DNA of 64,000 bases from Camelus dromedarius. Taxonomy: Eukaryota. Positions 14,301-57,000 of this stretch are shown here, in pieces. The stretch is taken from assembly GCF_036321535.1 (NCBI RefSeq), contig NC_087441.1, positions 6,944,001 through 7,008,000 on the forward strand, read 5' to 3'. The translations under genes were made by a program, and so were the position numbers. Positions within the stretch are counted from its first letter, which is position 1. Each line of letters starts with the position of its first letter. The notes below the pieces were generated by a model that saw only the letters and a program-made list of their open reading frames with translations, was not told where the DNA came from and ran no database searches.

Positions 14301-17300
14301 CGGCACCTGTGACCACGTGACAAGGATCCAGGCCTTACCTATGACATCCAGCTTCTGTGTGTGAACAAGGCCCAAGACCTGGACCTCACCCGAGGGGCTC
14401 TTTCTGCAAACACTGGCTCTGTCAGCGCAGTCGAGGGGCCCCTTATAGATCTTCTGACACAAGTTGATGAAGTAGCTGTGGAAGGACACAGACAGAGCGA
14501 TGGTCAGTGTCCGTCCCGACACACACGGGGCAGCTCTACCCACCCCTCCGGAAGAAGTCATCGTTCCAACAGCCACAGACTCCGTCACACCTTTGGACAC
14601 AGCACTGTAACAGATCTCCTGAGAAACAAAGGCCCAAGAGGGGCTACTGCAGAAGAAGGGAGCGTGTGTGCCCCCCGGGCACACGGGGGGGACCCTGAGT
14701 GTGGTGGCTTTAGAAGAAGGAGGGCTTTCGAGTCAGGACAGGCAGCAGCTCAAACCCTGGCGAGTTGTTACCTGACTCGAGGTTACCGAGGTCCTCCAGG
14801 GCCACGCTGCCCTCTGAGGGGAGGACGGAAGGACCTCAGAGCCCCCGGCCGAGGGCCCTACGCACAGAGCCGTCAGTGTAACTGACCAACCTCGGGCCAG
14901 CGCGGCCAAAGGAGTTTGTGCGGCAGCGCTAAGAAAGTCAACACGCCTCCCACACGCCCAGCCCCGGACAGCCGCCCTCACAGATGCAGACCCAATCGAC
15001 ACTAATTCATCAGGCCGACGGCCGATCAGCCGCTTCCTCTGCTTCCAAACCACCTGCTGGACGCCAGGCCTGAGACTCGTGGCCGCCCCACCTTCAGAGC
15101 CTGAGCTGAAGCAGCTGCCCCGTCAGGAACGGCACGCTCCTGCCTCCCGAGAGTGGGGCGAGGCGGGCGGGGGCAGGTACTCACGAGGCCCTGTCGTGGA
15201 CGAAGAACCAGGACCCGGTGAGGGAGGACAGGAGCCGCAGGTCATAGGTTTTGTGCTTCTGCACAAACTTGCACTCCATCTTCTTCGGGGGGCAGACAAC
15301 TTTTGTTCTCCACTCGAACGTCACCTCACACCCTCGAACTTCACTGAAAACTTGTGGCCTCCCCACATCAGCATCCTCGTCACACTTGAAGATGATGGCC
15401 GACGTCCGGTGGCTGTTTGCTGGGGACACAGGAGAAGTGTCAGACCGCAGCCTGTCTCCCCCCTGCTGCGCTAGCACCTAGGGGTTCTGTCCATTCCCAG
15501 CCGCTCCCCACGCTGCGCTGGCCACCTCTTGTTTTGTTCCTTTCACGTGTATCTTAAGCCTAAATAGACCTGGTTCCCCCAGTTCTTAATTCTGCAACAC
15601 CAGCACAACTCCTTGTAGACGGGCGTTCAGTATTTGATTAATACAGGAATGACAGCAAAAAATAAACAGTAATGATAAGATACCCATAATTACCTAAACC
15701 TGGGAGCACCACCCAACTGCCCAGGAGAAAGGTCCTGTCACGAAAAGCCTCAGGCCAAGACTGCAGCAGCCCCTTGTAAGTCAGCATTTCTCAGTCCTTA
15801 CTGCTAGCTGCGTTCCCCGGTTACTTACAAGAACTAAGCACGTTCTCCTGCATTCATCCCACCACCCTCCTGGAAACTCACATTGGTCTGTGTCACACAC
15901 GCAGCAGCGGCAAGGGCGCTACATCCGGGCCACTGTGACCCCCAAGCCCAGGCCCCCCGCAGAGCAGCCGGTCACCACACTCCTGATTACTCCCTGGACA
16001 CCCCGCAGACCCGTGACAGCGGCAGCTCTGCTCAGCGTGAGTGTGAATCACCAGTGCCGAGAACGGGTGTGGACCGAAGTCCTGCGAGCTGGGGAGTGAG
16101 CCGCGCTGACCACCCCACACCTGCTTTAGCCCCCGGCCCTGCCGAGGTCTACGTTCAAGGTAACGCAGCACAACCCACAGAGAGCTTAAAAACAGCCTTT
16201 CTTGCAGGGAGGGTATAGCTCAGTGGTAGAGCATATGCTTACCATGCACGAGGTCCTGAGTTCATTCCCCAGTACCTCCATTAAAAAAATAAATCTAATT
16301 ACCCCCCTCCAAAAAACCGCCTTTCATTATGGAAGACAGCCCTGACGAGAAAAGATTATGTGCAGCAGAGTCGCTGCCATGAATCTGGACACTGGCAGAG
16401 GTCTGAGCACGATGCGGGCCTCTGGGATGCGGGCGCTCCACTCACAGTGTCTGCAAAACCCCCACTCATGGTCTCGGTCATAGTTGGCGGTCGTCGCGCA
16501 CCAGAGCCGGGCCCTGCCCTCCAGGACACACTCATCGTAGCTCTTCTCATTGAACAGGAAGGGGAACACACACGGCTCACCGTCTTCAGTTTCTGGAAAA
16601 AAGAAGAAATCTACATGACCCCGACTGCCATCATGACACTGGCTGTGCCCGGCCAGATGCGATCCCCTAGGACAAGGACCCCCGTGGAAGCGATCACCCT
16701 GGACCAGCAGGGGGACAGCCAGGCCTCCCAGTCACCACGTGAGTGCTGGCACCCAGGGCTGTTAGTACAAGTAGTCTGAGGTCCAGTCCAGGGTCCCAGG
16801 GCTCACAGCATCTGGGGTGTCACCCCTCAGTTCACTCCTGCCACCTGATCTCATTTCGTGTTTATTAGGAAAAGGAAATTCAACCGCTGCAAAGATTTAC
16901 CTGGAGGGCAATTATCTCCATTGGCATAACTTAAAATGACGGCTTCGTCCTGGTGCCTGTAATCCAGTCTCATTGATGCCAGCCGCCCAAAAGATGTCCC
17001 CTTGCTCCCTGAAAGCAGACAGACGCCTCCATCCTTACAGCCACCTTGATCCAGGCCTGCGGCCGCAGTACACACCCCCACGCTGTAGGTGCGCGAGTCT
17101 TGGGTCACCTGGAGAGACATCACCATACGTGGCTGTGACTGGGTCTCGGGGAGAGGGCCGGCACCGCAGAGGGGAGGCTAGGGCAGGAGAGTGGGGCTGT
17201 GTCCGCGGGCTGGGCATGGGCTCCTTGGAGTTCACCCTCCTTCTCCCTGGCCCTGACCTCCCCCCACCCTCAGGCGGCAGCTGTGCTCCCGCAGGCCCAA

Positions 17301-25300: not shown

Positions 25301-28300
25301 TACCACCTGGCTCTCGCTGCAGCTGAAGTGGATGGTGGTGGACTTCTTCCGAATCCGATCGGGACACAGGTCACCATCGACATACTTCAGCAGAGTCATG
25401 CCATCTCTCCACTGGGGACCATCTCTCACCCTGCCGAGGTTCACGGGCTCGGAGCCACTCAGCAGACACACGGCCGCCTCTGGGGGGCACGGCTCTGCGG
25501 CACAAGGGGTACGAGGAACAGAGACATCAGTGGTTCTCCAGCCTTGGGCTCACAAGGCACGTGTGGCCAGCTGCGACATACTGACTCTAACAACCACTCC
25601 GAAGTGTCAGTGATTTCTTTCACGTACGTCACATGCCAAAGATACCACGCAAGTTCTCCCTCAATTAAACGCTGTTTTACCATAGGTGGACGGGGGGCTG
25701 GGGTGTGGGGAGAGTCTAAGGCGCAACAGCCTAAATTACTCCTGACCCCGAAGCAGGATGATGCTAAAATACCTCGATTAAGCCAATGGGACGTTTTAAA
25801 CGGCCTGCGTTCATGGGCTGTGTTTACCTAAGGAGCCACCAAGAGCTGCGCCATCTTCCCAGTCCCCAAAATGCCTGTGCCATCTGCCCTGGGCAAATGA
25901 GCCCCTTCACAGGTTAAGAACCTCAGTGTCACCAGTCTGGTCAGCACACAAGGCAACGGGAAGTGGGCCACGGCCTCAGACCATGCAGAGGATGGAAACA
26001 CTTATCGTAGTTACATAACGGGGGTGGGTACAGCTCAGTGGTGGGGTGCATGCTTAGTGTGCACAAGGTCATGGGTTCAATCCCCAGCACTGCCATTAAA
26101 AATAAATAAATAAACTGAATCACCTCCCCCACCCCTTGAGTTGAAGCCAGATAAGACGTGAGCGAGCTGCATGAAACTCCATGAAAATGGGACAGATCTC
26201 GTTTTCAGGATCCCAACAGGGGGCACCATGGTCTCTGTGCATCGCCCCTGGCCCCACGTGGACCGCTGAGTTCTAGTCTCATCACTGGCACCAGGGGTCT
26301 GGGTGCATCGTAAGGGGCCCTCACCCACATTACTCTCAGTAGATGCGTGGGGCAGGTACCCACATCTCCTTTCACACCCTCCGATCTCCTGCCCTGCTGA
26401 GAATTACCTGCAACGATGATTATTTCTACCTCTGTCTCCTCAAGTTCAAAAAAGGTTATATAGCGTTTCCAGCAGAGCCTTCAGCACTGATTTGTCCTGG
26501 GCCGCACCAGGGTCAGTCACTGACCCTCAGATAACTCTTCCTGTTACTTCTTGGCCAAACCACTCACATAACAGAAAGCAACACACCTTCAAGGAGCCTC
26601 ACTCTTACTCGTTCCTTCCCCATAAAGCCCCTTACAAGCCACCAGCCCACCCTGAGACCCCTCACCCGAGCCAGCCTGGGGAGCCAGAGACTTGCAAACG
26701 TTGATGAGGTAGTGCTCGGTGGCCCCCGTACTCGTGATGGCCTCCCAGTTGTCACTGTATCTTGACAGGGGTGAGAGGTCGTAGGTGTTCCCAGCCCCGT
26801 CTCTGAAGGGAAGAAAGCACGGCCGTCAGGTTCAGCTCTGTCTAACGGGGTCCTCGGTGCCCCATCTGGAAAGGCTCCGGCACTTAGAGCACAGCCTACT
26901 CCTGACACCCTGGGAATCAGGTCCTTCCAGGGACAGAACTTTATGCGGGACTCTCCCATCTCTGGTCAACCAGCAGCAACACAGCCTGAGTTCAGGAAGC
27001 ATCAAGCAATTATGTATTAACCTGAAAAGGCAAACAGCAAGTGCTTGCCCTGCTCAGGCCGGTGAGCAGACGAGGGTGCCCGGCTGGGGCACACGGGGCC
27101 CCCTCAGGCAGCCCGGGAAGGCCACCTGCTGTCTGAGCCCGAGGCCGCCGGCAGTCACTGACGTAAAACCGGCCGGGGCGGACTTTCTGCTCAAAGGTTT
27201 ACTTTCTACACAAATTCCAAACAAGGACAGTTACTGGGAACCAGCCCCACACCAGGTGCAGAGTCAAAGGTAAGAAAGACAAATACTCCACCTGCGGGGC
27301 ACCAGGTCCAGGTAGAGACAGACAAGAACACCACTTGAGTGAGAATCACTCATTCATTCAAAAACCACGTGCCCCACAACTGGGGGTGTTGTATTGAAGG
27401 AAAACAGATCAAAATCGCCCATCTTACGAAGCCTGCAGAAGTCACCAGTGGAAGAAAAACCACAAAAAAGAACTTTTTTTTTTTAATGTATATCAGATGG
27501 CAACCAGAGTGAAGAGAAGAAAAGGCAGGGTGGTGGGGTGGGCAGGGATAAAGTCTGGGAGAGGGAAGAGGAGATGAGATCAGACAGCACTCAGAGACCA
27601 CCTTCCTAAGGAGCCACCTCTGAATAAACTCAGGAAGATATGGAAGAGCCAGGCATCCAGGGACTCAGCACAGCACAGCACAGCATAGGCAGAGGGAGCA
27701 GCACGAGCAAAGGGCCTGGGGCACAGAGAGCCTGGTGAGGTCAAAGGCAAGGAGCCCCATGTGGTCGGAGCAGATCAGACGTGAGGAGTGAAAAAGCAGG
27801 GGCTGTGGTGAGACGTGATACAGGGGGTGTTCCAGCCTGTAGTGAGGACTCCAGCTTGAGACGGGCTTCACTGCACTGAGGGGTTTCAGCAAAAGCACCC
27901 TCACTGACCTGTAATTCAACAGCTTCACTCTAATCATCGAGCCGGACTGTCCCGCGTGTAGCAAGGGGACCGACTGAGGGGTGACTGCAGTGGTGCAGGT
28001 GCAAGATAAAGCCACATGAACCAGGGTGGCGCACTGCTTCCAGAATGGAGAGTCCGAGGTATTCTGAAAGTTGATGGACCGTCAACGGCCACACCACCCA
28101 GAACACGTCCAATCTTGTCTGAAAGTTGATGGACCATAAATAGGATAAGAGAGAAAAGATGCCAGCATTAACTAATACTGGAATCTGTGGGAGCCACCAG
28201 TTTTTGCAGAAGCAAGTCCTCAAGAACTTCACCTAATGGACCAGCTGAGAGGCTTACTGTAAATGGTTGAAGATCAAAAGAGGAAACTGAAACTATCGTG

Positions 28301-31300
28301 AAAGAAGGGGGCAAAATGGAGGGAAGAAAGGGTGGATTAGAAAGAGTACCAAACAGACCTCCTAGAATGAAAAGTACAGTCATGAAAATTAAAAAGGCAA
28401 CAGTCAAAACAGCGCATTAAACCAGCTAAGAGACCAGCTGATAAAACTGATTAATAGAAGTTCCAGAAGAGACAGATAAGGTTAGAGGCAACATTCAAAG
28501 TTACAGTAACTGCAAATATTCCGAAACTAGTAACAGACACGCATCTTTAGTTTCAGAGAGCACTGACTTGCAAGCAACACAGACAATAAAGCCCTATACA
28601 AGCAAATCAGAGCGAGACTGGAATACACACAGGGAAATACATAGGGAAGGCATGAAATTAGGACCAAAGGGGGCAGATCCTCTACCAGCAACGCTAAGCA
28701 CAGGAAGATGATGGACACCTTCAAAGTGCTGATACACACACACAAACTGTTAACCCAGAATTCTGTATGAGGCCAGCGAGGATAAGCCCAAGCCTTTTCA
28801 AATGAAGACCAAGACTGAACCCCACAGACTCTGTCAGAACTACCGCGCGGGTGGTGCAGTGCGATGTGGACCCCAGGCCTGGGCAGCGGCGGTGCAAGGA
28901 GTCGGAGTCAGGAGATGAGCCAACAGTGGACTTACTGGTATAAATCACTAACTGTATGTATTTCCATATGTCACTAACACTTCAAAAATTATTTCTTTAT
29001 CTAAATAAAAGGACATAACACAACAAGAAGACTGGAAGGAAACACGGAAATGACCAAATTTCTCCCAGGACAGGACGCTATAACTCAGTGATTTTTTTCA
29101 GGTGGGGTCCTCACACAGCAGAAATGTCAGCATGTCCCTTCAATACTCAGGACGTGTAGACCCAAGAAACCACACTCTCCAGGGACAGAACCCAAGAGGT
29201 CTACTTTGTAATAGTTCTGAGAGTGACACAACTGAAATTCACACACAGTGAAGGTCACCTTATCTCGAGAGCTGCCAATCACCCGATTTCAGAGGCTTAC
29301 TTGAGCCACAGGTAACAGAACAAAAGAACCAGGCGGCCACCAAGAGCCTGCCGGTTGGGTGTCACCCCCTCGTGCTCTCTCCAGCCCACCCCCATGCAGC
29401 TCCGCCATCACCTTCCTCTTCACTGTTGTGTCTCCAGACACAGGCAGCCCCTGGGGAGGAGCAGAGGCCAGGGCACACCCTGCTCACTCCAATCCGCTCA
29501 GACCCATGAATCATGCACGGTTTTCTGTTTCAACCACAATCACTTCCCTGAACCTTAACTCAAAGTAACCAAAGCCTCTCAGAGCTGTGAAGGGTTTCAT
29601 AGGTAACCTAACCCAACTTGCCAGTTTAATATTCAGGAACTAAGGCTTCAAGAAAGCACCTGACTAATCTAATGCCCTGTCCCTCAGGCAACTATTAAAG
29701 CAAAAATATTATCAAGTAAATCAGACTGCCCAAGAGCCAACATCCCCATGCACTTACTTGAATGAACACTCGGTCAGGTCAAAAGGCGGGCAGGCATACT
29801 GCGTGCGCCACTCGAACAAGTAGGAGCAGTCTGAAGTCTCCTGGAGGAACACCGGCTGCAAAAGTTGAGATACATACCCATTAAGTGGAAACTTCATTTG
29901 CGGGGGGCGGGGGGGAGGGTTAAGACTTTTTTCTTAATAAAAAAAGTTTTTTAAATATATTTTTACTGGAGGTACTAGGGATTGAACCCAGGACCTCGTA
30001 CGTGCTAAGCATGCACTCTACCACTGAGCTATACCCTCCCCACTGGGAAACTTCAGTTTTAAGGATGCAAATAGTAAGGGATGGTCCTGATCTTTACTCA
30101 ACACGCATTGATCAAAGCTTGAACTCACTTTCTGTACATAACATATTTAAACTAAGTTAACCAGGAAACTTCAAGACTTAAGAGCAGATTCTTTTATAAG
30201 ACAGTGGCCCCTGAGCTGGCAGACCGACCCTCCCACCCCATGTGCACTGAGCACACTCACCGCCTGGGTGCTGCGGTCACAATAGAAAAAGATGGTCGTT
30301 GAGCGCTGGTACACCTTGTGGCAAGGGTCCCCCCCAGTATAGTTCATCTTCAACACCCCATTCTCATAGGTCAGCTTCTGAGTAAGCAGACCTGTTCAAG
30401 AAGAAGCTAGTCAAACAAGGATTGGTTCACGAAGTCCCCAGGCCACCAGGCTGGTCCCCAGACATGTTACGCCACACACCCTGAATGAACTCTCACAGGA
30501 CCAAGTATGTCTGGCCTACCAGCACTGGACCACTGGCCCCATCACATGACACCATGGAAGAATAAAACCAGGCCTTCTCTTGGCCAAGGCTGTGACCTTC
30601 CAGACTACCCACGGGATCACCGACATGGAGACACTCCTCAGCCTGATGAGCTAAGAGGATGTCACCTCGTCTGCACAGCCCCCAAGGTCTTCCCACACAC
30701 CCCCCATCAACTACTTCAACTTCTTTTTTTTAAAGTTCTTAAACTTAGCATCACTTGCCCGGCTGTTGAGACAGCACAATGACCACAGCCTGCCCCATAA
30801 GTTTTACAGCCCAAGCCTACACAAAATGTGTCCCCTTGGACTCAATTCTAGAAAGTACGACCTCATTAATAGTCCAGTGGGTCCTAAAGGTAAAATAGAA
30901 AAAAGAGACATGAACTTAGAATCAGTAACTGGCGTGGCTAAGCACGAATGAAATAAACTCTAACAACGCTCATCAGCCGAGGCCCGGCTACGAAAATCAA
31001 GCGAAAGCAGAGACGTCACTAACACGCTGTCCCCTGGAGCGCAGGAGTCACCCTTCCCACCTGAGACAGACGTCGCCTGTAGCCTGATGTCTTAAATATG
31101 TAATTCCATTCTTGTGCAAAAACAAGGAGGAAAAACCACGGTACCTGCCACTTTCTGAAATCCCTCAGGTCCCCGCTTTTCCTGACATGACGAGACGACC
31201 CTGGACCTGTCACCGGCCGAGCAGACGCCCGAGGACAGCCTTCCGCAGACGCGGAAGTAGTACGTGTACTCGCCGGCGCTCACGACCGTGTCGTTGAGGG

Positions 31301-32999
31301 CGAGAGGCTTCAGGTCATACAAGTTGCCATGCCTCGGGTCCTTCACTTCACAGTTGTCTCCTTCAAGAACACGGCGAGGGAAGGGCATCGACACAGGCAC
31401 TCACACTTTCAGGCAAACGTTTTGCAACTTTTCATCAGCTAGGAACTGTCTTAAAATAGGCATTAAATATCATTTCCACCTGTTTTCATCTGGTTTGTGT
31501 GCATGAGACAAACTGCCTGGCAAACAGCTTTCTAGAAAAGCTTCAGGTCACAGGCTGAAGATCCACGTAAGCAAGACAAAGGCCCACGTTCATGTTCTCA
31601 CCAACCACCCACCAGTCAGGAACGTGAGGAAAATGTTACAGGTAAAGTTAGCAACGGAGTGGGGCGAACAAAACTCAAGGGTGAGAATGACCCGCCCGCT
31701 GACACGCGGGGCTGCACGCCCATGGGGCTGCTGCACCCCCTTCGCACATCCACACGTCGCTGAGCGGCGTAGGGCGGCGTCTTACCTTCGACGCGGACCA
31801 CAGGACAGGCCTCCACCGTTCTCCAGACAAACACGTACTCGCAGTCGTCCAGAAGCTGAAAGGTCGGCGATCCCTGCAGTGGAAACCAACAGTTCACTGT
31901 GCTCTCACTCAGCAAAGAGAATCAGTCAAACGCCAGCCAGAGCTGACACCCGACTTGCAACCACGAGAAAAGTACACAGCACTTGGGAAACATGTCAGAC
32001 CTGCGGGGACACAGCACGTGCTGGTCGGGCCCTACTGATGGCCTGACCCCCTCGAGAACATGGGCAAGCTCTAACTCAGACAAGAGAGCCGAGGTGGCAG
32101 GGACAGGCACGCACCGTCGTGTGGGAGCACTCAAGCATAATCCTGGTGGAGAAGCGCTGGTTCCCGCACTTGTCACCGTTGACATAGACGAGGCTCAGGG
32201 ACCCATTGGCGGCAGCTTGAGGGCTGACCTGCACGACGCCCAGGTTCCAGCTGCTGTCCTCCGACACCAGGCAGGACCCCACAACGCTGCCTGGAAGAGC
32301 CAGCAAGGCCGTTGGACGTGGGGAGGGGGGGCACGACCAACTGGGGTCCAAGGCGCGACACCCACCATGGCAGCCGGGAATGTAAGGGAGGGAGTTGCAG
32401 ACACTCAAGTAGAAGGTTCTCCTCTTCCCATCAGCCGAGGTGTCAACTGCAGTCCAAGGCTTCCTGGCTTTGCTTAAGCCGCTCAGATCATATTCGTTCC
32501 CAGCCGGGTCTGAAACACAAGGCAAATGCTGGAGACCCCTGCCTTCCCATGAGCGCTGGGCATCACTTCCAACCCCGAAGACCAAGGATGCACAAACAGA
32601 GCATCATTTCAGAAAAATGAGGGGACCCACAGCAAGCCGAGAGGGCTTCCAACAGAAACATCATCTGCCTGGCCCTCAGAACCGCGACTCACGACAGAGC
32701 ACCGTGGACATGGAGGTGGGGCCGGTCCCCAAGGAACAAGGGTCCTGGAAGCCCCACTGGGTGTCAGGGTCCGTCTAACAGGGCCTCATCCTGGTTCTTT
32801 TTCTCTCACTCAGGTGAGAAGCTCTGACAGTGTATTTGACTTTCCCCTTAGTTTTCTTCTGTTCTTAAGCAGCTTCTGATTCCAAAATATTGCTTAAAAC
32901 CATGAATTACAAATCCAGACTCTCCTCAAGAGAAATTTTATAACTCTAGGCATTGTCCACAGAAAACACGTAGCACACATGTCGTGCTGCCTGTAAAAT

Positions 33000-33050
<51 letters not shown>

Positions 33051-36000
33051 TTGATCAGCCTCTTAATTCCTGGTCCTCCAACCTCACCTGTGACTTGGCA
33101 ATCCACCGGAGAAGGTACACAGGCCAAGGCCGTTTCAAACTCAAAGAAAGTGTCCCGGATCCCAAGGCCAGAGTCGATGTCTTGATGCAGGAACCTGGGG
33201 TTCCCTGGGTAAACGTCACCATTGCAAACAAAGCGGATGATGAAAGCATCAGCTCTCCCTGGAACAGGAAGGCCAGGCTGTGAGCAGCAGCAATCATAGT
33301 GCCGCTGCCCGCACGCGTGTGTGGCACCAGGATGGCGCCCCCGAGAACCAGCCTCCAGGCCACCCCCGGGAATTCGTGCCGCAGCACTGGGTCTGTTCCA
33401 GGGACCTGATCCGAGCTCCAGGGAGGCCACATTCATTGTGACAGTGACTGACATAAAGGTGGGTTTACACCATGAACTTGGCATTCTTACATTCCAGAAA
33501 GGATGCAAATGTTACATCCATTTATCCTCCCAAATGTTAGAAAAACATCACTCTCAGGTCCTACTATGCACAGGAGTGAAATACACAGAAGAAAGCCCCC
33601 ACCTCCTAGGAGACGACATCCTCGTTCGGCCTGAGGCGCCAGGCAGAAAGGGAGTGGAGTGTGGCAGGGACAGGGCCTAAGGAATCACAAGGGTGGCGGG
33701 GATGAGGCGTGGCGGTTTTGAATGTGGCGGCCGGGCTCACTGCGAAGGTGACATCTGAGCCCATACCTGCGGAAGTGAGGAAACAAACCGCCCGGCCATC
33801 CTGAGAGAAGAGGGAACAGCAAGGACCAAGGCTCAGGAGGGGACGTGGGCGAGTGGGCCTTCACAGTTCCGGGAGCACGCGGCCACCGGGACTGAGCCAG
33901 GAGAGTGGAGGGTGACCCCGTCAGAGAGAAGCAGCAGGTGTCCCACAGCCACTGGGTCGGGGTTGGCTTCTACTCTGGGTGCAGGTGGGGCCCTGGGGGC
34001 CCTGAGCTGGAAGTGACGTGACCTAACATTCAAAATGTCACTCTGACTGCCAAGAGGAACACAGGCTACTGCAGTGGGGGTGGGGAGGAGGCTCCCACAG
34101 CAAGGGGACCACAGTGGCTGGGGGCTGCATTCACAGAAGAACGTCGTGGTCATTGACACATTAACAGGTCCAGAGGTGCCCATTTAACACATAAGGAAAC
34201 TGAAGCAGAGAGGTTAAGGAACAGGCTGGGCCGGGGTTAACACAGTTATGCACGTGCTGTGCCCCTGGCTTGCTGGAGCCTGGATTCAAACCCCGCAGAG
34301 TAAACATTGGCAGCTGTCAGCCACACGAGCTCATCGGTAACCCTGCAACGGCCTTGCCGGCTCTTCCAGGCAACGCTGTGCGGTCCTGCCTGGTGTTGGA
34401 GGACAACAGCTGGAACCTGGGCGTCATGCAGGTCAGCCCTCAGTCTGCCGCCAACGGGTCCCTGAGCCTCGTCTTCATCAACAGCGACAAGTGCAGGAAC
34501 CAGCACTTCTCCACCAGGCGGGCAGACACAAGGAAAGAGCCCCAGCACCCGTGGTCCAGGATCCCTCTCACCGCAGGATGGCCCCCAGGGGCCTGGCGGA
34601 ACACAACAGGGGGCCGTGCACGTGTGGCCCAGAGTCTCCGGGCACTCAGGTCACGTACTCAGAACCACCAGACATTTGTCAGCTGCAAAAACAACACAGA
34701 TCTGGGCTCACCTCCAGAATGGGAAGGCGACCCCTTGTAGGTCAGAGTTATGAAGCCCTCGGTGGACAGCTGAAGGCTCTTCTCCAGTCCAACCAGCCTT
34801 CCCGGCTTCAGATTCTTGAGGTCCTCCTCCTGGGTCTCTGCCTCACAGCCGGAAGCCGGCTTTCCGTCCAGGGTCCCACAGAGGGGCGTCGTGCCACACA
34901 CGTTAAACTGCAGGCCGGACAGTGAGAACCACACGCTAACTCAGGGCACGTGACTCACCAGCAACACGAGCCCCAGCAACTCAAAGCCTGCCAAGCTAAA
35001 CAGTTGTTACTTATTATCAAAATTACCAACTTTCCACGTTTGGGCAGTTACTTTCCTAAATCTAGCACGTAAGGCCAAAATGAGCGTCCAAATGGCAATG
35101 CCCAGAATTGCCCCTAAGGCTTTATGCGCACAGCCTGCATCCCTAAACGCATGATACATGTTACACATGATAATGCAGCATCTGTAACGGAAGGAACACG
35201 AGTAGTCAGAATTTCACAGTATTTTTGACCACATTAGAAAAAGTACATATAGTTGAAGTCACGTTAATTAAAAGTAAATAAAACGTGATACCCCTGTATT
35301 TCTTAAAGATGTTGACACCATTCCACTGAAGGGGAATATGTTCTTTGGTTTGAACACACAGAAAGGAAAGACTTCTCTGTAACTGGTTAAGTGTCCGCTA
35401 ACAACATCTACTAAATTAGGATCTACGTACAGAAAGTGATGTTCCTAGACCAAAGCTTCCGGCTTAAGAAATGGCCAGTCAAGACTACACCCCAGACAGG
35501 TGCCCTGCAGCCACACGGGCTGTGTGGTTACAGGAATCTGATGGTGCAGATTCAGGGCCCCCTCTCCCCTTTCTGGTCCTGCCCATAAGTTCACAACAGA
35601 GCCGAGAGAAGTCCAGGATGGCTCTGCCAGGTGGTGGGCACCAGCCAGCCTGGCTGCCCCCACCCACTGGCCTCTCCATTCGCGGGTGCTCAGGCACCTT
35701 AGCAGCGTCTCACTTGGCAGCTTCGGCCGCACGGGGGCCCCCAGGAGCAAGATGGGGCCGCTGGGCCTGGCAGGCCGGGTGAGACAGGTGCGATGCCAAC
35801 AGTCAGCTGGAGGGCGGGGGTATCCTCAGCCTCTCCGGCAACACGCTGACCGTGCCTGTCTCCCAGGAGCCTGGACACCTCCCAGTTTGTCCCCGCCACC
35901 TGCGACTGACAGGAGTGACGCACACCTGCTACGCCTGCTACTGCACAGGCAGAGCCTGTCAGGCCTGCCCCTGGCATGTTCTCCGCGGGGTCACCCCTTC

Positions 36001-39000
36001 TGGCATGCTCCTCAGGGGGCGCAACAAGCTCGTCCGCCTCACGCACTCACACTGACATCCAGCTGCACTGTCACCTGTTAGAACCTATTATAAACCAAAC
36101 TGGAGCAGCAGTTTCTGAGAGGATGTCGGTGGAGGGATGGGCCCTGGCCAGGTGTCTTCCGGCCCCGGAACCCGCTGTACGCTCTCTGGCACGCACTGCG
36201 CTTCTCTGCTTCAGGTTTTTATAAGACAGTCCCAACCCAACTTCCTGTTTTCAAAAGTTATTCTCTTCTCCCAGCATGGATTTTGCTAGAAATTAACTGA
36301 AATAAAGATTCTTAAAAAGCTTCCTTCCTTTCCAACAGCACTCAGTGTCTAACCAAACGGCATTAAGTGGAGGTTTTCCTCCTCGCTGCTCGAGACACAG
36401 CATCAGGGCCGCCCATGGAGAGAGTGAGGCCAGAAGATCCCAGAGCACAGCCGGTGGGTTGTCCCCTTGTTACAGGGAAAACAATCACCGTTTCCTCTGG
36501 ACTAGCGGCTCTCAAACCTCACTGCACATCAGAACCTCCTGGGGCCTTGTTAAAACAGACCGCTGGGCCCCACCCCGAGACTCTACAGGTTCCCAGGCAA
36601 TGCCCAAGCTGCTGGACGGAGGACCATGGCTCCAGACACTCGGCCACAGGTTAAGAATAGCTTATTTTCTGAAGAATGACACCCTCACGTCTGCACTGAT
36701 GCAGGATGGGGTGATGGTTTCACCTCACTTGCCCTTAAATCTGGATTTTCTGAGTCCCCGGGGTGAGAGCTACCATCACCGCGAGCTGGGCAATCCCTGA
36801 GGATGCTGCCCGCCCCACGCCTATTCCCCATCACCAGCTGCAGGTGACTCAGGAATCCTCCCCTCGTTTCAAAGCAAAACAGAATTCATCACGTAAGCCT
36901 TACCAAGAAGATCTTCCCGATGCCTGAGACCACGTATCCTTGGGACTTGTTTAGTGGGTTCAGATCAAACACATGCCCACTGTTGGGGTCCCTGATGGAG
37001 CAAGCCTGCAGGAACCAAAGGGGGAAAGAATCACTCAAACGAAGTCCACGAGAACACGGCAAAGCCAGAGCACCTCCAAAACCTGCCCGCATGGACCGCT
37101 TGGACTTTAAAGCCCACTCAGAGAAGCAGCCCCGTGTGTGCTCATGGCCCTGACAGACATGGCAACTGAAGTGCTCCAGGTGTGACACCGGCTCAGAGAT
37201 GCTGACGGTACTCGAGCTCTTAAGGCTGCAATCATTACCTGGACAAGAAGATGGCTGCTGATCCCCAGGGAAATGTGAGAACTGCAAGAGACCCACAATT
37301 CATTAACTGTCTCTTCTCCTCTTCTAGGAGGTGGAAGGAACCTCCCTACCCCAACGTGTCTTTTTTCTGTCCCGCCCACCATATGCAGGAAACAGAGCGG
37401 CAGCCACAGCCTTGGGCTGCACTGACGGTGGGTGCGGGCGGCATGCCACCATGCCCACCCTCCCCGGGCACCCTCCAGCCAGGACCCTGTCCTGGGAACA
37501 TTCATCAGTCCGGATGCTGCTGCTGGCGGAGCTTTGAAAAGGGAGGGAGGGAAACACATTCTTTATTGTAAAGAAAAATACCTAGTGCCATGGAAACAAG
37601 GTGCACCCTTGCGGGGTCAGAGAGCACGTCTCAGAGCAGCCTGCTGCCCGGTTCTGCAGGTGCAGGCTCGCCCGAGGGCAGGAGTGCATCCCAAGGCTAA
37701 AGGGCGGGATGAGTCTAGCACTTCAGTGGGCACAGGGCTGAAGTGGACGACGTGGGAGGAAGGTGGCTGGGACCAGAGCGTTAAACCCTCAAGTATCGCG
37801 TTGAAACAGATAGACTGTACCCTACAGATAATTTCACATTAAGACATACAGGCTGTATTCTATAAACATGTGACACTGGAACATACAAGTGTATCCTACA
37901 GATGGCGGGGCTCTGACATGTGTCAGGTGCTGAGTGACACACGAGCACTCATCTCTGCAGTGATGGAGAGCCCAGAGCCCCTGCAGCACTGAAGGACGTG
38001 GCGTGGAGGAAAAGGAAGGAATCTACAGGAATCGGGGAGTTAAACGGAAGGTCCTGGTTCTTCTCCCAGGATCTGGGAGCCAGGGGTGAGGGAGAGGAGT
38101 GCAGGATGACTTCCAGACGCCTGCTGTCAACACTGCGGAAACAGAGGCGCCAGTAACGGATTAAGCAGCACAGGGAAGGGGTGCAGAGCCAGGACACCTG
38201 GACAGGAAGGTCTGGGGCAGCTCGGCGGGAGGCCCAGGACAGCACACGTACCTGGTCTGTGTCTGTCATTACTTGGACAGGACAGGCAGCCTCTGTATTC
38301 CACAGGAAACTGACCACGCACTCCCAGTTGAGAGAAAATATGGGGTGGGTATTCTGAAAGGACAAAACCAAGATGACAGTCAATATAAGAAAATGGAACT
38401 CGATCTAACCAAAAGAATACTAGTCTGATAAATAAAAATAGCAAAAATCAACAGAACAATTATCATGCCAGTGACAGGCTAGGTGCTTAATGTGCCTTAA
38501 CTAATTAGAACTTTTTAATTTAACATCCTCATTATTCCCATTAAGGAGATATTATCTCTTATGCTCAGATGCCAGTAAATTCACCTGAGATCATGACAGC
38601 AGTAAGTGGCAGAACTGGAATCCAAACCTAGGTCTGAGCCCAAGTTGATGCTTTTGCAAAGTGTTCTAAACGTTCTACACCCAGAGTGCAGAATACAAGA
38701 GCCAGACACTAAGACCACGGGGCGCACGATCACAGCCACGAAGAGGCAAAGCTGACCCGCAGGGTCACGGGTCAGGACGGGTGGAGAAGTGACCAGAAAG
38801 GGGCAGGAGGAGGCCCCTGGGCGCTGCTGGTGTCCTGTTTGCACACGTGGGTCTAGTTTACACAGGTGCATTCAAGCTGTGGAAGTCCACCAGCTGTAAC
38901 TTACAACCCACGCACTTTCCTGAGTGTTTTCAATAAAAAGCCCCCCAACGTGTGCCACACCAGCTTCTGAGAGGGCATCGCCTCCACCACGGGCAATGGC

Positions 39001-42000
39001 CACTCAGACAGAGGCCGTTGCCACCAGACACTGCGCAAAGGATGCGACAGCATTTCTCAGCTAGCGTCACAACAACCCTCACCTGCCATCTGTACAAATG
39101 AGAACACTGAGGCCTGAGAAGGCGCCTGCCAAGATGCACAGGGAAGGAAATCACAGTGGTCTGTCACCCACCAAGCGCCCTTTGATCTGGAAGTCCCCCT
39201 AGCCACCCTCTCAGCCGCAGTCACCAACAGTGAACTAAGAGCACACCCATCCCTTCTGCCTCATGACGTGGTTGTGAGAAGTTCCGTGACTTGCAGAACC
39301 TCTGGGACATCACCTTCACTCACTCGGTATTTCCTGGGCCCTGGAAATGTGCCAGGCCCTGAGCCGAGGCGGAGAGATACAGTAACAAGGAAAATAGCTC
39401 TGAAAACTTAAAAACTCTGTCCAAACAGGATGTCACAGGAAAGCTGAAAATAGAAGGGTCTGAGAGATCCTCCTGAAGTGTCCAAGATCTCCATGGCAAC
39501 GAGACACCAGAGAAGGGAAGGGGGGTGGGCCAGGCCCAAGAAGGGGACCCAGAGGTGCACCCAGGGGGCGGCACAGAGGAGGGCCAGGCTGTGCAGCCAG
39601 GAGTCCTTCCCGAGACCAGGAGTGGAAACCGGGAAACCGAGCTTCGGCTTAGCAGACTGCGTGTTCACGTCTCAGTGCAGCCACTCTGCTCGCACACACG
39701 GGCCCTGCTCAGCCAGTAAGTACTTCACTCCCCTGTCAGAGCAGCCTTCTGGGGCTCAAGAGACATTATCTCTTGGGAAAATATTGTGTGCTGGCAAAGG
39801 ACAGAGAAAACTTGGCATCTGCAAGACGACTAGAAGGTAAGGAACCAAGGCCCCTGGCCTGCTCAGAGAGGAGTGACCACATGGGGGGCCAGCTCATGTC
39901 AATCAGGCGAGAGGAGGCTGAAACACAGACTTTAGGAAATAATCTGTTTGATAATAAACAAGTTCTATTTTCCTCACTCTGTTCATCTAAGGGTTTGGCA
40001 ATTATTCGAAAAACACATGATCCAAGTATAAAAGATCCAGGTATAAACTCCAGGTGAAAAAAGCAAAGTTCTGGAAATCCTTACTGGTGATAGGTGCACA
40101 ACGCTGTAAATGTACTTGTATTTTATTATATATTTTTTTAGTGGAGGTGCTGGGGATTGAACCCAGGACCTAGTGCATGCTAAACACATGCACTCTACCG
40201 AGTTACTTCCCTCCCCTATCATAAATGTACTTAATGCCACTAAACTTTACACATAAAAATGGCTAAAATGGTAAATTTTGTTATGTATTTTCTGCCACGT
40301 TTTTTAAAACCAATTGAGACTGTACATAATGACCCCAAAGCATTCTTATTTCCAGTTTTCTCTTCTGTCCTGACTAAGGAACTCAGGCCCAAATACAATC
40401 TCTATCACCGTCTCCATTTCTTAACCTTAATTTTTTATTCCTGCTTTGCTGACATACTACACATCCATCCCTCATTGTTCATCCCTGGCCCTGAGCTGTG
40501 CCCAGCCTCAGTTTCCTCATCTATGAACTTTGGGGTTTGGACCAAACCATCTCTAAGACTTGTTCTGCTGCGGTGATCCTGGGATCACCAACTCACAAGA
40601 ACTAAGGGCAGGACGGTGTCCATACCACTCAGAGAAAACTCAGGTCTACAGAACACCATGCAGTACGTGCCACAAACCAGCAGTAAGAGATGAGGCTTCA
40701 ACTTGCGAAAGCACAGCCGCAAGAGCACCACTGCGTGCTCCCTGCCTCCCCGCCTTTACATCACATGCTGGCCTGAAGCAGAGTAAAGAGCAACCGCCAC
40801 CCCTCTGAACCCAAAGCAGCCCAGGCCATGGGCGACCAGCGGGGCCTCCCTTACCAGGCTGCCCCTGGAGCAGATGAGGTGGATCCTGGTGGTGTAGGCG
40901 GTCCGCTTCCCGTCGCTGGTGGTGCAGGCTGAGCCATTCACGTACTCCAGCAGTAGGCTGCCGCTCGCCTCCACCACCGGGCCTGTCTTGGCGACCCCCA
41001 AGTTGCTGATGGAGACGATTTCAGAAGACGAACCCTGCAAACACGTATGTCTGTTAGATCTCCCTCTGAAGAAAAACAACTCATTTCGTCATGACTAACA
41101 TAGTGGAGTCTTGTTATTCACGGCAGGGAGCTGTGTTCTACAAACGCGACACAAATACTCAATTGGCAAGCACGGAGCCACCCTTCCTACATGTAGGGGG
41201 AAAAACTGTCAGCCTTCTGTATCCGCGGGTTCCACAGCCGTGGATTCTATCAAATTTGCATCAAAAATATTCAGGAAAAAAATTCCACAAAGTTCCAAAA
41301 AGCAAAACTTGAATTTGCCTCCAGCATCTATTAACATAGCATTTACGCTGTATCTACAACTGCAACATAGCATTTAAATTGTATTAGGTATTACAAGTAA
41401 CTGAAATGAAGTAAGGATGTGTTTAAGTAACATTAACACTGTAACACTGCATGTAAAGGACTTGAGCATCCCTGGATTTTGGTATCTGCTGGAGTCCTGG
41501 AACCAATGCCGCCCCCACCTCTCCCCTCCCCAGTACACCGAGGGACAACTCTAGGTATCTCGTGTACACTTATCTCACAAAGATAATGATCGTAAATCCT
41601 CAAAATCATTGTAGACTCTATTTTATCTTACGAAAGGGCAAACGACGTTCAGATATGCTAAGTGACTTATTCGAGGCCACCTTACTAACAGGCATCAGAG
41701 GTGGGACTCAAACCCTGTCCGCCTGGCCAGGAGCCAGGAGCTTCTGACGCTGCACTGCCTGTCCCCTCGTGACTCCATCCTCTGGCCACCGGGTAGGAGA
41801 GCTGGACAAGAGCGTGGAGCATGACACCCACGTCAGGCCACTCTGCACACGTCCATGAAAGACTGTGAAGGCACCAGGACTGATGTGGGGTTACAGGTAA
41901 TTGTCACCAAGTAGACAAACTCGCAGATACAGAATTCGTGAGTAAAGAGGACAGGCTGTACTGGGAGGCCGTTGCTCCACCCAAGAGCACACACGCTTAA

Positions 42001-54000: not shown

Positions 54001-57000
54001 CACGGAATTGGACACAGAGCAGAAGAGGTGGACTTCAGAAAGGGTCTCCTACAAGCCTAGAAGAGGTGAGGGTGATGGAAGAAAGGAGAATCTGGGGAGG
54101 GCAGAGGCACCCAAACCAGAGGGAGACATACCCAAAGGCCACACCCAGGCCAGACGCGGGCCACCCCCTGGTTAAAGTCCCTTTGCACGGATTTCTACAT
54201 CAAGTCCAGCTCCTCTGCAGGACCTACAAGCTTTTCACCATGTGGCTCCAGTCCCCTTTCTAGGGTCATCGTTAGCCACGTTCTGGACCCATAGCTCTGA
54301 CCTGCTCACAGCTTCCCCAGTTCACACCTCTGCATGAGCTGTTCCCTCTGCCAGAAGCCGAGTGCCCACAGGTCCCCATCTTCTGCTCCTGGTTTACCCC
54401 TACTTGTCCTGCAGGGCTCACCCAAGCAGCACCTCCTCTCATCTAACTGCCTGCCCCTTACAGATACCCACCAACCTCAGGGTCTCCCTCCTGATAAAGA
54501 CCCAGTGACAGTGCTTGCTGCCCGGGCGCTCCATCTAGCCTGCATCAGCCTGCACCGCAGTCATCACTCTCCGGATCTCCCTCTGCTTCTGGTCTATGAA
54601 TGCATGGAGGCTCTCCATCATCTCAGCATCCTTAGGCCCCAGAGGGTCGAAGCAAACAGGTGCTAATAAAATGTGTGTTGAATGAATCGACTGAGAACAC
54701 AAAAAGTTCAGTGAACAGAACCCAACGTCACACCAGAGTGCACGATGGGGAGCAAGGAGGGCTGGCAGGTAACAGTAGAGCTGTGAACAAGGGTGACTAC
54801 AGACAGAAATGACAGGAGTCAACGGGACATCCTGACATAAGGTCCTCCATTTGCGCCCTTAGGTCACTCTCCACTTACTCTCCAAGCTGCTTATCAGCGC
54901 CTGGTGCTCGTCACCACCTCTCCTGACCACTGTCACTGTCACAGATACACTCCTGAAGCACAGCAGCCCCTCCCAGGCCCCTCAGTGAATCATGAAGGAG
55001 GCTTCCCTGTGACCAGATGGTCAAAAGCTCTACCACAGAAACACACCAAACAAACAGCAGGAAGGGCCAGGAGACCCTCAGGGGCGGGGCTGCTGTGCAG
55101 GCCTATGCAAACGGGGCTGGACCCAGGCGGCTCCAGGACCGAGCCCATGCGGAGGCTTGGCCAGCTTGCAGAGCAGCTGAGGTCCCCACTTGGAGGTGCT
55201 CAGGTGGGACAGCTTTCTTATGACAGTGGGGTCCCATGCATCCCTGCAGATGCAACCCGAGTCCAGAACGTTGGAGACACAGGCAGCAGCCTGGCTTTTT
55301 GCAATGCCAGTGCCATCGTAACTTCAAGGCCACTTCTCCCACTGCTCAGGAAAACCAAACGTTTGTTTAAGCTTGCCCTGTTACCTCTCATGATCCCAAA
55401 GCCTAGGCTGTAATGGGGAGTCACCATTTACAAAAAGACTCACCTAGAAACTCATCTCCTAAAAGAAGAGCTGTTCAGCAACAACCCACTTGGAGCTGGT
55501 GACTCAATGCGGCCTGCCGGCTCTGCACGCGCTCCAGTGAGAGCCAGGGCTCAGGACGGAACGCTTGCCCAGCAAGCCAGTGCTGGGCCCATGCCCAAAA
55601 CAAACAGAGCACGGGGGAAAATGGAAACAGGATGTGTGTGTCGTGGGTGGGGCGGAGCTGGGGTTCTCCTGCCCGCTCCAACAGAGGAACCTAGGCTGGG
55701 ACCTGGAGGTGGCCGAGTCTGAAGGAGGACACTTGGCCTCTCCACCCAGCGCTCATCCATGCAGACGTGGTGAAGCCCAGGGCCCGCTCACCTGCAGACT
55801 GACTGCACTCGAAGTTGATGACGCTCATGCGCTGGAAGCCAGAGCTGCACTCGTCACCTCCAAAGTAGATCAAGGTGAGGTCTCCGTCGGAGTACCTGGA
55901 TTTTTTAACACGCACACAAACATTTGGTAGAACCAAGAAACTTGAATTTTTAAACATGTCTATATTAAGTCTTTTGCACACCGTCCACAAATCAGCACTG
56001 ACAGAAAACAGCAAGCTCTCCCGCCAGCTGGGAAAGAATTGTCTCAAGGAAATGAGTTCCAAATGTGCGGGGCTTGTCATCCCCTTATTTCAAAGTAAGA
56101 ACTGGCTGGAAGAAAGCACTGAAGGTTTTACTCTGAGCACAAAGACCCCTCTGCTCTCATTTTTGGATTTTGTACAAAATAAGTGATGCCCAAGAAGACA
56201 CAGCGTTGCGAGCAACTGCCCTAAGACGTCTCACCTGAGGGATCCTGAACAACGCTTATTTTTTCAGAGAACTACGCTTTTGCAACGCTTCTGTGCATGT
56301 AACAACCAAGGTAAGGGTTGCAAGAATGTGATGAATGCTTTCCCCGTTGTTTAAAACTTTTGTTGCAGGAGGAGGGTGTAGCTCAGTGGTAGAGTGTGTG
56401 TTTAGCATGCACGAGGTCCTGGGTTCAATCCCCAGGACCTCCCTTAAAAATAAACAGGTAAGTAAAAAAATAAACCTGATTACCCTCCCTCCCCCAAAAA
56501 AGAAAAAAAAAACAAAAAAACTTTGGGGAATGCCAATGGTGTTTCAGATTCTCAAACCGCCAAAGGAAAAACAGTAACAACAAAAAATCAAAACTCCTCA
56601 GAAACATAAATCTTAGGATTACAAAAGCCAAATAAAGCGATTAAATAATCTTCCTACAGTGTGGCTCCTTACAAACAACATAAAGCAAATGGTATGAACA
56701 GAACTCCCTGACGGTGAAGCCCAGGAAAGCATCCACCTGCTCAGGGGCAGACGGCAACATGCCCGAGTCAAGCAGGAAAGCGTGCAGGCTAAGCTGATGT
56801 CCTGCACTTTGTGCAAAACGCGAGGAAGAGGCAGACAAGGGGAGGTTTCACAGGAAGACACACAAGGCACTTCAAAGTGATGCGAAGGCGGTACCCACCG
56901 GAGGGTTTGATTCTGGAGATTTCCTGCCACTTTGGCTTGAGTGGAATCTGACTTTTTCACTTGGCAAACAGCAGCATCCTTCTTATTACAGACCTGTGCT

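Follow-up and report, generated by a model that had tools for sequence, protein, structure and literature searches.

Intron 22 of the dromedary gene for the cation-independent mannose-6-phosphate receptor (IGF2R, or CI-MPR) carries, in inverted orientation, a diverged copy of the start of exon 25 of the same gene. How did a piece of a coding exon come to lie backward in an intron two kilobases upstream, and does it do anything there? We addressed both questions in the 64-kb stretch of DNA that was analyzed here, which we call the window. The copy is a real, camelid-lineage, and previously unremarked micro-rearrangement of a known kind. We put at roughly three in four the probability that it arose on the camelid branch in a single deletion-insertion by template switching, and that the antisense copy is a tolerated, noncoding relic of that event.

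The minus-strand open reading frame (ORF) at this locus matches IGF2R (bovine 6UM1 residues 1095-1145 and 1145-1203; domain 8 of the human receptor). By tblastn, residues 173-2495 of a full-length bat protein were placed on the minus strand between 63215 and 2578, and counted against a 48-exon structure, the window contains exons 5-48. This count is consistent with the numbering of exons 22 to 25 used in an earlier model-made reading of these letters (the sequence-only reading). For the boundaries of these four exons, splice sites were taken from the sequence itself. Exons 5-48 take up ~61 kb here; by comparison, the entire gene spans roughly 100 kb or more in deer, bat, pangolin, pig, whale, horse, and cat. 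In homologue searches across many vertebrates, the closest protein by far was a partial Camelus ferus IGF2R model, and no full-length camelid IGF2R was among the results. The public C. ferus gene model splits IGF2R into 1594-aa and 616-aa products beside assembly gaps, and the annotated camel protein is therefore incomplete.

Within this part of the gene, exons 23 and 24 together make 315 nt, in frame. The 75 nt of intron 24 are a multiple of three and free of in-frame stops, so that a single 169-aa ORF runs from exon 24 through the intron into exon 25. Retention of the intron would add 25 residues in frame, and read-through ORFs of the same kind from other mammals occur in the protein collection (P0001 and P0002). 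Rfam returned no known RNA within 30000-37000.

The inverted pair, found by repeat search and by self-BLAST of the window (E 3e-59), spans 173 nt at 90% identity with no gaps, has its arms 2031 nt apart, and is the sole long repeat of the 64 kb. A base-by-base count gave 17 differences in the 173 sites (14 transitions, 3 transversions, and no indels), reproducing exactly the ungapped match that the sequence-only reading had reported. As the splice sites read, the copy consists of the last 24 nt of intron 24, with its acceptor intact (CTCTTCCAG followed by G), and the first 149 of the 176 nt of exon 25, placed antisense to IGF2R 193 nt past the exon 22 donor (Table 1). Its homology to exon 25 ends abruptly after CCACCAGG. 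There was no extension of homology on either flank, where local alignment of 500 nt gave scores within the shuffled range. The content and the sharp end are thus as first described.

Table 1. Features of the inverted pair and its surroundings in IGF2R (window coordinates)
Feature	Coordinates	Strand	Basis or remark
Inverted partial copy, end of intron 24 and start of exon 25	34346..34518	+	Identical in C. ferus L003:64959-65131
Source segment, 3' end of intron 24 and first 149 nt of exon 25; downstream arm of predicted duplex	32142..32314	-	Identical in L003:67146-67318
Exon 22, 196 nt	34712..34907	-	Splice sites, tblastn
Intron 22, 1453 nt, host of the copy	33259..34711	-	Splice sites
Exon 23, 171 nt, within loop between arms	33088..33258	-	Splice sites, tblastn
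Exon 24, 144 nt, within loop between arms	32366..32509	-	Splice sites
Intron 24, 75-nt mini-intron, in frame, stop-free	32291..32365	-	Splice sites
Exon 25, 176 nt, bovine CI-MPR residues 1145-1203, domain 8	32115..32290	-	Protein match, splice sites
Intron 22 block with orthology to deer (68%) and, weakly, to pangolin; starts at TTG	34170..34348	-	Alignments
141 nt between conserved start of intron 22 and copy	34519..34659	.	No alignment to deer, pangolin, or bat, nor elsewhere in the window

The other repeats returned by self-BLAST were microsatellites and five ~90-nt dispersed fragments only. The latter lie on both strands (16198-16294, 26020-26116, 29945-30041, 40121-40199, and 56359-56454), are 79-91% alike, and are probably old SINE/MIR-type pieces. 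The window is otherwise strikingly repeat-poor.

The copy is a noncoding relic and not an exon. It is antisense, is under no coding constraint, and has no donor, because it ends 27 nt short of the end of exon 25. When compared with some 40 mammalian sequences, 10 of the 12 amino acid differences between the arms are derived in the copy, whereas exon 25 itself is derived at two positions (A to V and N to S). We considered the Val in "VQVSPQ" as a camel-specific state common to exon and copy, and rejected it, because Val also occurs in whale, pig, shrew, hedgehog, and xenarthrans. The sequence-only reading had pointed out that the frame of the copy is still open. A frame of 50 codons is indeed open, which is unremarkable after ~10 random changes; the constraint that would give it meaning is missing. 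The same reading saw the copy as decaying under methylation, and this holds in part: five CpG sites of the exon are TpG or CpA in the copy, but about three CpG transitions fall in the exon arm too. Four sites, overlooked in that reading, are CpG in the copy and non-CpG in the exon arm, and the CpG counts of the two arms are close (10 in the exon arm and 9 in the copy).

How the copy arose can be read largely from its surroundings. Most of camel IGF2R aligns to deer or bat at about 70%. Intron 22 is alignable in three parts only, namely, its first ~50 nt, a block running from 34348 downstream in gene sense, and its 3' part. The distance between the first two of these anchors is 1657 nt in deer, 1488 nt in pangolin, and ~1 kb in bat, and the middle segments of these three species align with one another and not with camel. 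At that place the camel has 141 nt of unmatched sequence and then the 173-nt copy. The 141 nt may be either rearrangement filler or an unrecognizable remnant. On the gene strand, the last 3 nt of the copy, TTG, are also the point at which orthology with deer and pangolin restarts, so that the two positions agree to within 0-3 nt. This possible microhomology is common to the copy end and the deer orthologue at the one junction that is anchored to an outgroup, and 3 nt carry a ~1/64 chance of coincidence.

Because the copy includes intron sequence and has neither a poly(A) tract nor a target-site duplication, we regard it as a local inverted duplication at the DNA level and not a processed retrocopy. 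Reading of the flanks and the repeat search also found no direct repeats at its borders. A transposon-derived repeat fits poorly as well, as the window contains no third copy of the arms and one of them is the orthologous exon 25 of all mammals examined. What is found is a template in cis, 2031 nt away and inverted, with deletion and complexity at the same breakpoints, as in templated insertions. The sequence-only reading had named a template switch of the FoSTeS type from the intron content, and the accompanying deletion, and perhaps the TTG overlap, now speak for it too. In the preferred reading, a single deletion-insertion would have struck IGF2R intron 22 in the camelid lineage, after its split from the other even-toed ungulates. 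Some 1-1.6 kb of ancestral intron 22 would have been lost and replaced by 141 nt of filler-like sequence and a 170- to 173-nt inverted copy of the junction between intron 24 and exon 25, which lies 2 kb downstream, by template switching during replication or by templated end-joining at a 3-nt microhomology. We infer that deletion, filler, and copy belong to one event.

The placement of the event on the camelid branch rests on presence and absence and on the copy itself. The C. ferus locus (L003; GCA_000311805.2, KB016679.1) is 99.4% identical to the window (99.1-99.5% in alignments covering 49 kb, with 0.63% substitutions) and holds both arms at equal spacing, each 100% identical to its counterpart. 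The inverted copy is absent, with a single exon 25 in each case, from red deer (L004), the nearest non-camelid artiodactyl compared, from Malayan pangolin (L005), from the greater horseshoe bat Rhinolophus (L002), and from a 6-kb Logan contig (L001) whose best alignment is to the bat. As far as compared, the copy is therefore specific to the lineage, as had been suspected. The 24 intron bases of the copy match camel intron 24 at 23 sites; in deer and bat, many of the 24 are different. This puts the duplication on the camelid branch. Searches further afield added nothing: the 156-aa ORF of the copy had no match in a 5.8-billion protein set, an exact look-up of an ORF beside the copy had no record, a metagenome scan with this ORF and an exact search with the junction 22-mer returned no camelid DNA, and a literature search on camel IGF2R gave nothing relevant.

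Between the two Camelus genomes, the closest differences (34334, 34336, and 34544) flank the copy closely on both sides, and none falls within either arm. There are also substitutions at 32133 (exon 25) and 32408 (exon 24), and the (CA)n microsatellite at 33003-33049 in intron 23 exceeds its C. ferus counterpart by 18 nt.

For the age of the event, branch lengths were estimated from 21,983 intronic sites of IGF2R with deer and bat as outgroups. They came to 0.089 substitutions/site on the camel branch (0.076 without CpG), 0.215 on the deer branch, and 0.21 on the bat branch; the camel branch is thus much shorter than the other two at these sites. When the 17 differences were polarized, the derived state lay clearly in the copy at 9 sites and in the exon arm at 1, with 7 ambiguous. 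With deer as the nearest outgroup, the copy receives ~10-11 changes and the exon arm 6-7. The copy branch is then ~0.06 over all sites, a value inflated by 10 CpGs, and 0.033 at non-CpG sites (5/153). Taking the camel-ruminant split at 55-60 My (PMC3514880), the event is roughly 25-45 My old, with Poisson limits of ~10-60 My and a noisy local clock. The Camelini-Lamini split has been put at 25 My by mitochondrial genomes and at 11 My by fossils (PMC1939714). Llamas and alpacas therefore probably share the copy, which is a prediction of this dating.

As both arms lie in one pre-mRNA, a near-complete duplex of 173 bp is possible. In silico, the sense pre-mRNA would form 156 Watson-Crick pairs and 12 G·U pairs with 5 mismatches, so that 168 of 173 positions pair at a predicted -377 kcal/mol, in helices of 43, 30, 45, 15, and 35 bp. 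In a predicted minimum free energy fold of the 2377-nt stretch, 164 of the 173 arm positions pair arm to arm. The exon 25 acceptor would be buried in such an intron-exon duplex, together with its pyrimidine tract and the putative branch site, and exons 23 and 24 would be looped out. The complementary arms bracketing these two exons far exceed the 30-40 nt at which inverted repeats suffice for circularization (PMC4201285). ADAR editing, back-splicing, and splice-site occlusion are known mechanisms that could act on the predicted duplex. By default, the duplex is most likely a tolerated by-product of the duplication.

The nature of the 17 differences is the main reason to ask whether pairing has been more than tolerated. 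Twelve of them are G·U wobbles in the sense RNA, versus only 2 in the antisense RNA. In either arm, the only changes that preserve pairing as a wobble are C to U and A to G on the RNA-sense strand, and 12 of the 14 transitions in the arms are of this kind. Strand-biased mutation as the cause was rejected because the local intron spectrum is symmetric: camel-lineage transitions in IGF2R introns number 456 of wobble type and 494 of disrupting type over the 21,983 sites, a fraction of 0.48, and those at CpG sites number 39 and 51. Against 0.48, 12 of 14 gives a binomial p of 0.004 in what is a post hoc test; for all substitutions, likewise post hoc, 12 of 17 preserve pairs versus an expected 0.31 (p = 0.0009). 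A conservative version, also post hoc, treats the arms separately (6 of 10 in the copy versus 0.31, and 6 of the 7 remaining sites versus 0.48) and yields a combined p of 0.019.

It is possible, then, that the intronic arm has been kept by selection as an exon-complementary sequence, serving ADAR editing of exon 25, formation of a 315-nt circle of exons 23 and 24, or tuning of the exon 25 acceptor and intron 24. The wobble bias is not what a purely neutral relic predicts, and it hints weakly at maintained pairing. The absence of indels in 173 nt goes in the same direction. So does the absence of differences between the two Camelus genomes in either arm, which is given little weight since only ~2.2 were expected (P = 0.115, not significant). 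These two sequences are nearly identical and offer no compensatory pairs. Against this, the wobble test was devised after the pattern had been seen, it uses 14-17 sites, and coding selection filters the exon arm, and for these reasons we treat the excess as a lead only. Moreover, the overall rate of the copy looks about neutral, five true mismatches have accumulated (all three transversions among them), and the upstream arm may leave with intron 22 before exon 25 is transcribed. The wobble test raises the chance of maintained pairing, but to a level that we still consider low, though not negligible. The fuller proposition, a camelid-specific exon-complementary element that would have been born by inverted duplication of the exon itself, stayed paired for tens of My, and governed processing of exons 23 to 25, is slightly more doubtful still. 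The tolerated relic of a template switch is the reading we prefer.

A different origin for the same copy was also weighed. A break in intron 22 might have been repaired by reverse transcription of a nascent lariat-3' exon splicing intermediate, with the transcription stopping at the intron 24 branch point. The intron-side boundary of the copy (-24 to -21) falls on a branch-point-like motif, CAAC(G), at -24 to -20 of intron 24, which is conserved in camel, deer, and Rhinolophus; once the 3-nt overlap is subtracted, the part certain to be copy begins at -21, just 3' of a candidate branch adenosine at -22. Priming from the end of the coding strand would, in addition, give the inverted orientation. 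However, the branch point is a guess from the sequence, with -29 equally plausible, and the coincidence was noticed post hoc. The hallmarks of reverse transcription are absent, and a DNA template in cis, 2 kb away, explains everything without RNA. An RNA template is accordingly less likely than a DNA template switch, and we judge it improbable.

Least probable of all is that a mis-joined or chimeric read made the inverted segment, an artefact for which the comparison with assemblies of the short-read era gave no support and which is effectively excluded because a separate C. ferus assembly, 0.63% different elsewhere, carries both arms unchanged; a ~10% divergence between arms is also unlike an assembly duplication.

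A DNA template switch would place the camel copy among the templated insertions attributed to FoSTeS/MMBIR and polymerase theta, with which it has in common a short inverted segment, a cis template at ~2 kb, a deletion, unmatched filler, and a 3-nt overlap at the one junction examined. In contrast to those, the camel event is old, fixed in the germ line, and seen as a product only, with one junction anchored to an outgroup. It resembles a processed retrocopy as a nonfunctional copy of coding sequence, but differs in that it has an intron portion, lacks a poly(A) tract and target-site duplication, comprises part of one exon, and sits inside its parent gene.

With regard to the predicted RNA, ADAR-directing exon-complementary sequences such as those of the GRIA2 Q/R site and BLCAP form duplexes that are shorter, conserved across vertebrates or mammals, and proven to be edited. 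In the camel intron, too, a stretch is complementary to a coding exon of its own pre-mRNA, with a long imperfect predicted duplex and one A·C mismatch at exon-arm position 98, where a Gln codon has its third base; however, this element is confined to camelids and has its arm 2 kb upstream. Plant proto-miRNAs and animal hairpin endo-siRNA loci are hairpins born by inverted duplication of target-gene sequence. The camel locus is similar in that a genic inverted duplication would give a long hairpin RNA, and dissimilar in that both arms lie in the parent pre-mRNA and one of them is a working exon. Finally, the arms bracket exons 23 and 24 in the manner of circularizing intronic inverted repeats such as Alu pairs (Liang & Wilusz 2014, PMC4201285), but they consist of unique gene sequence rather than transposon copies, and exon 25 with its acceptor makes up most of the downstream arm, which is not purely intronic.

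As a structural variant the copy is ordinary, as small inverted templated insertions are known products of replication and repair errors. The value of the case is that it is clean and datable, with template, product, deletion, and one junction still readable. It also carries an annotation risk: a spurious plus-strand CIMR-like match may turn up at the copy in gene prediction and alignment, as it did with tblastn.

Taken together, the copy most likely does nothing for the protein and is a tolerated relic. Nonetheless, a near-perfect predicted duplex of 173 bp sits in the pre-mRNA of an important receptor gene, and there is a modest chance that it is a working RNA structure. If the pairing has in fact been maintained, the camelid locus would be a dated example of the one-step birth of an exon-complementary editing or circularization element from its own exon.
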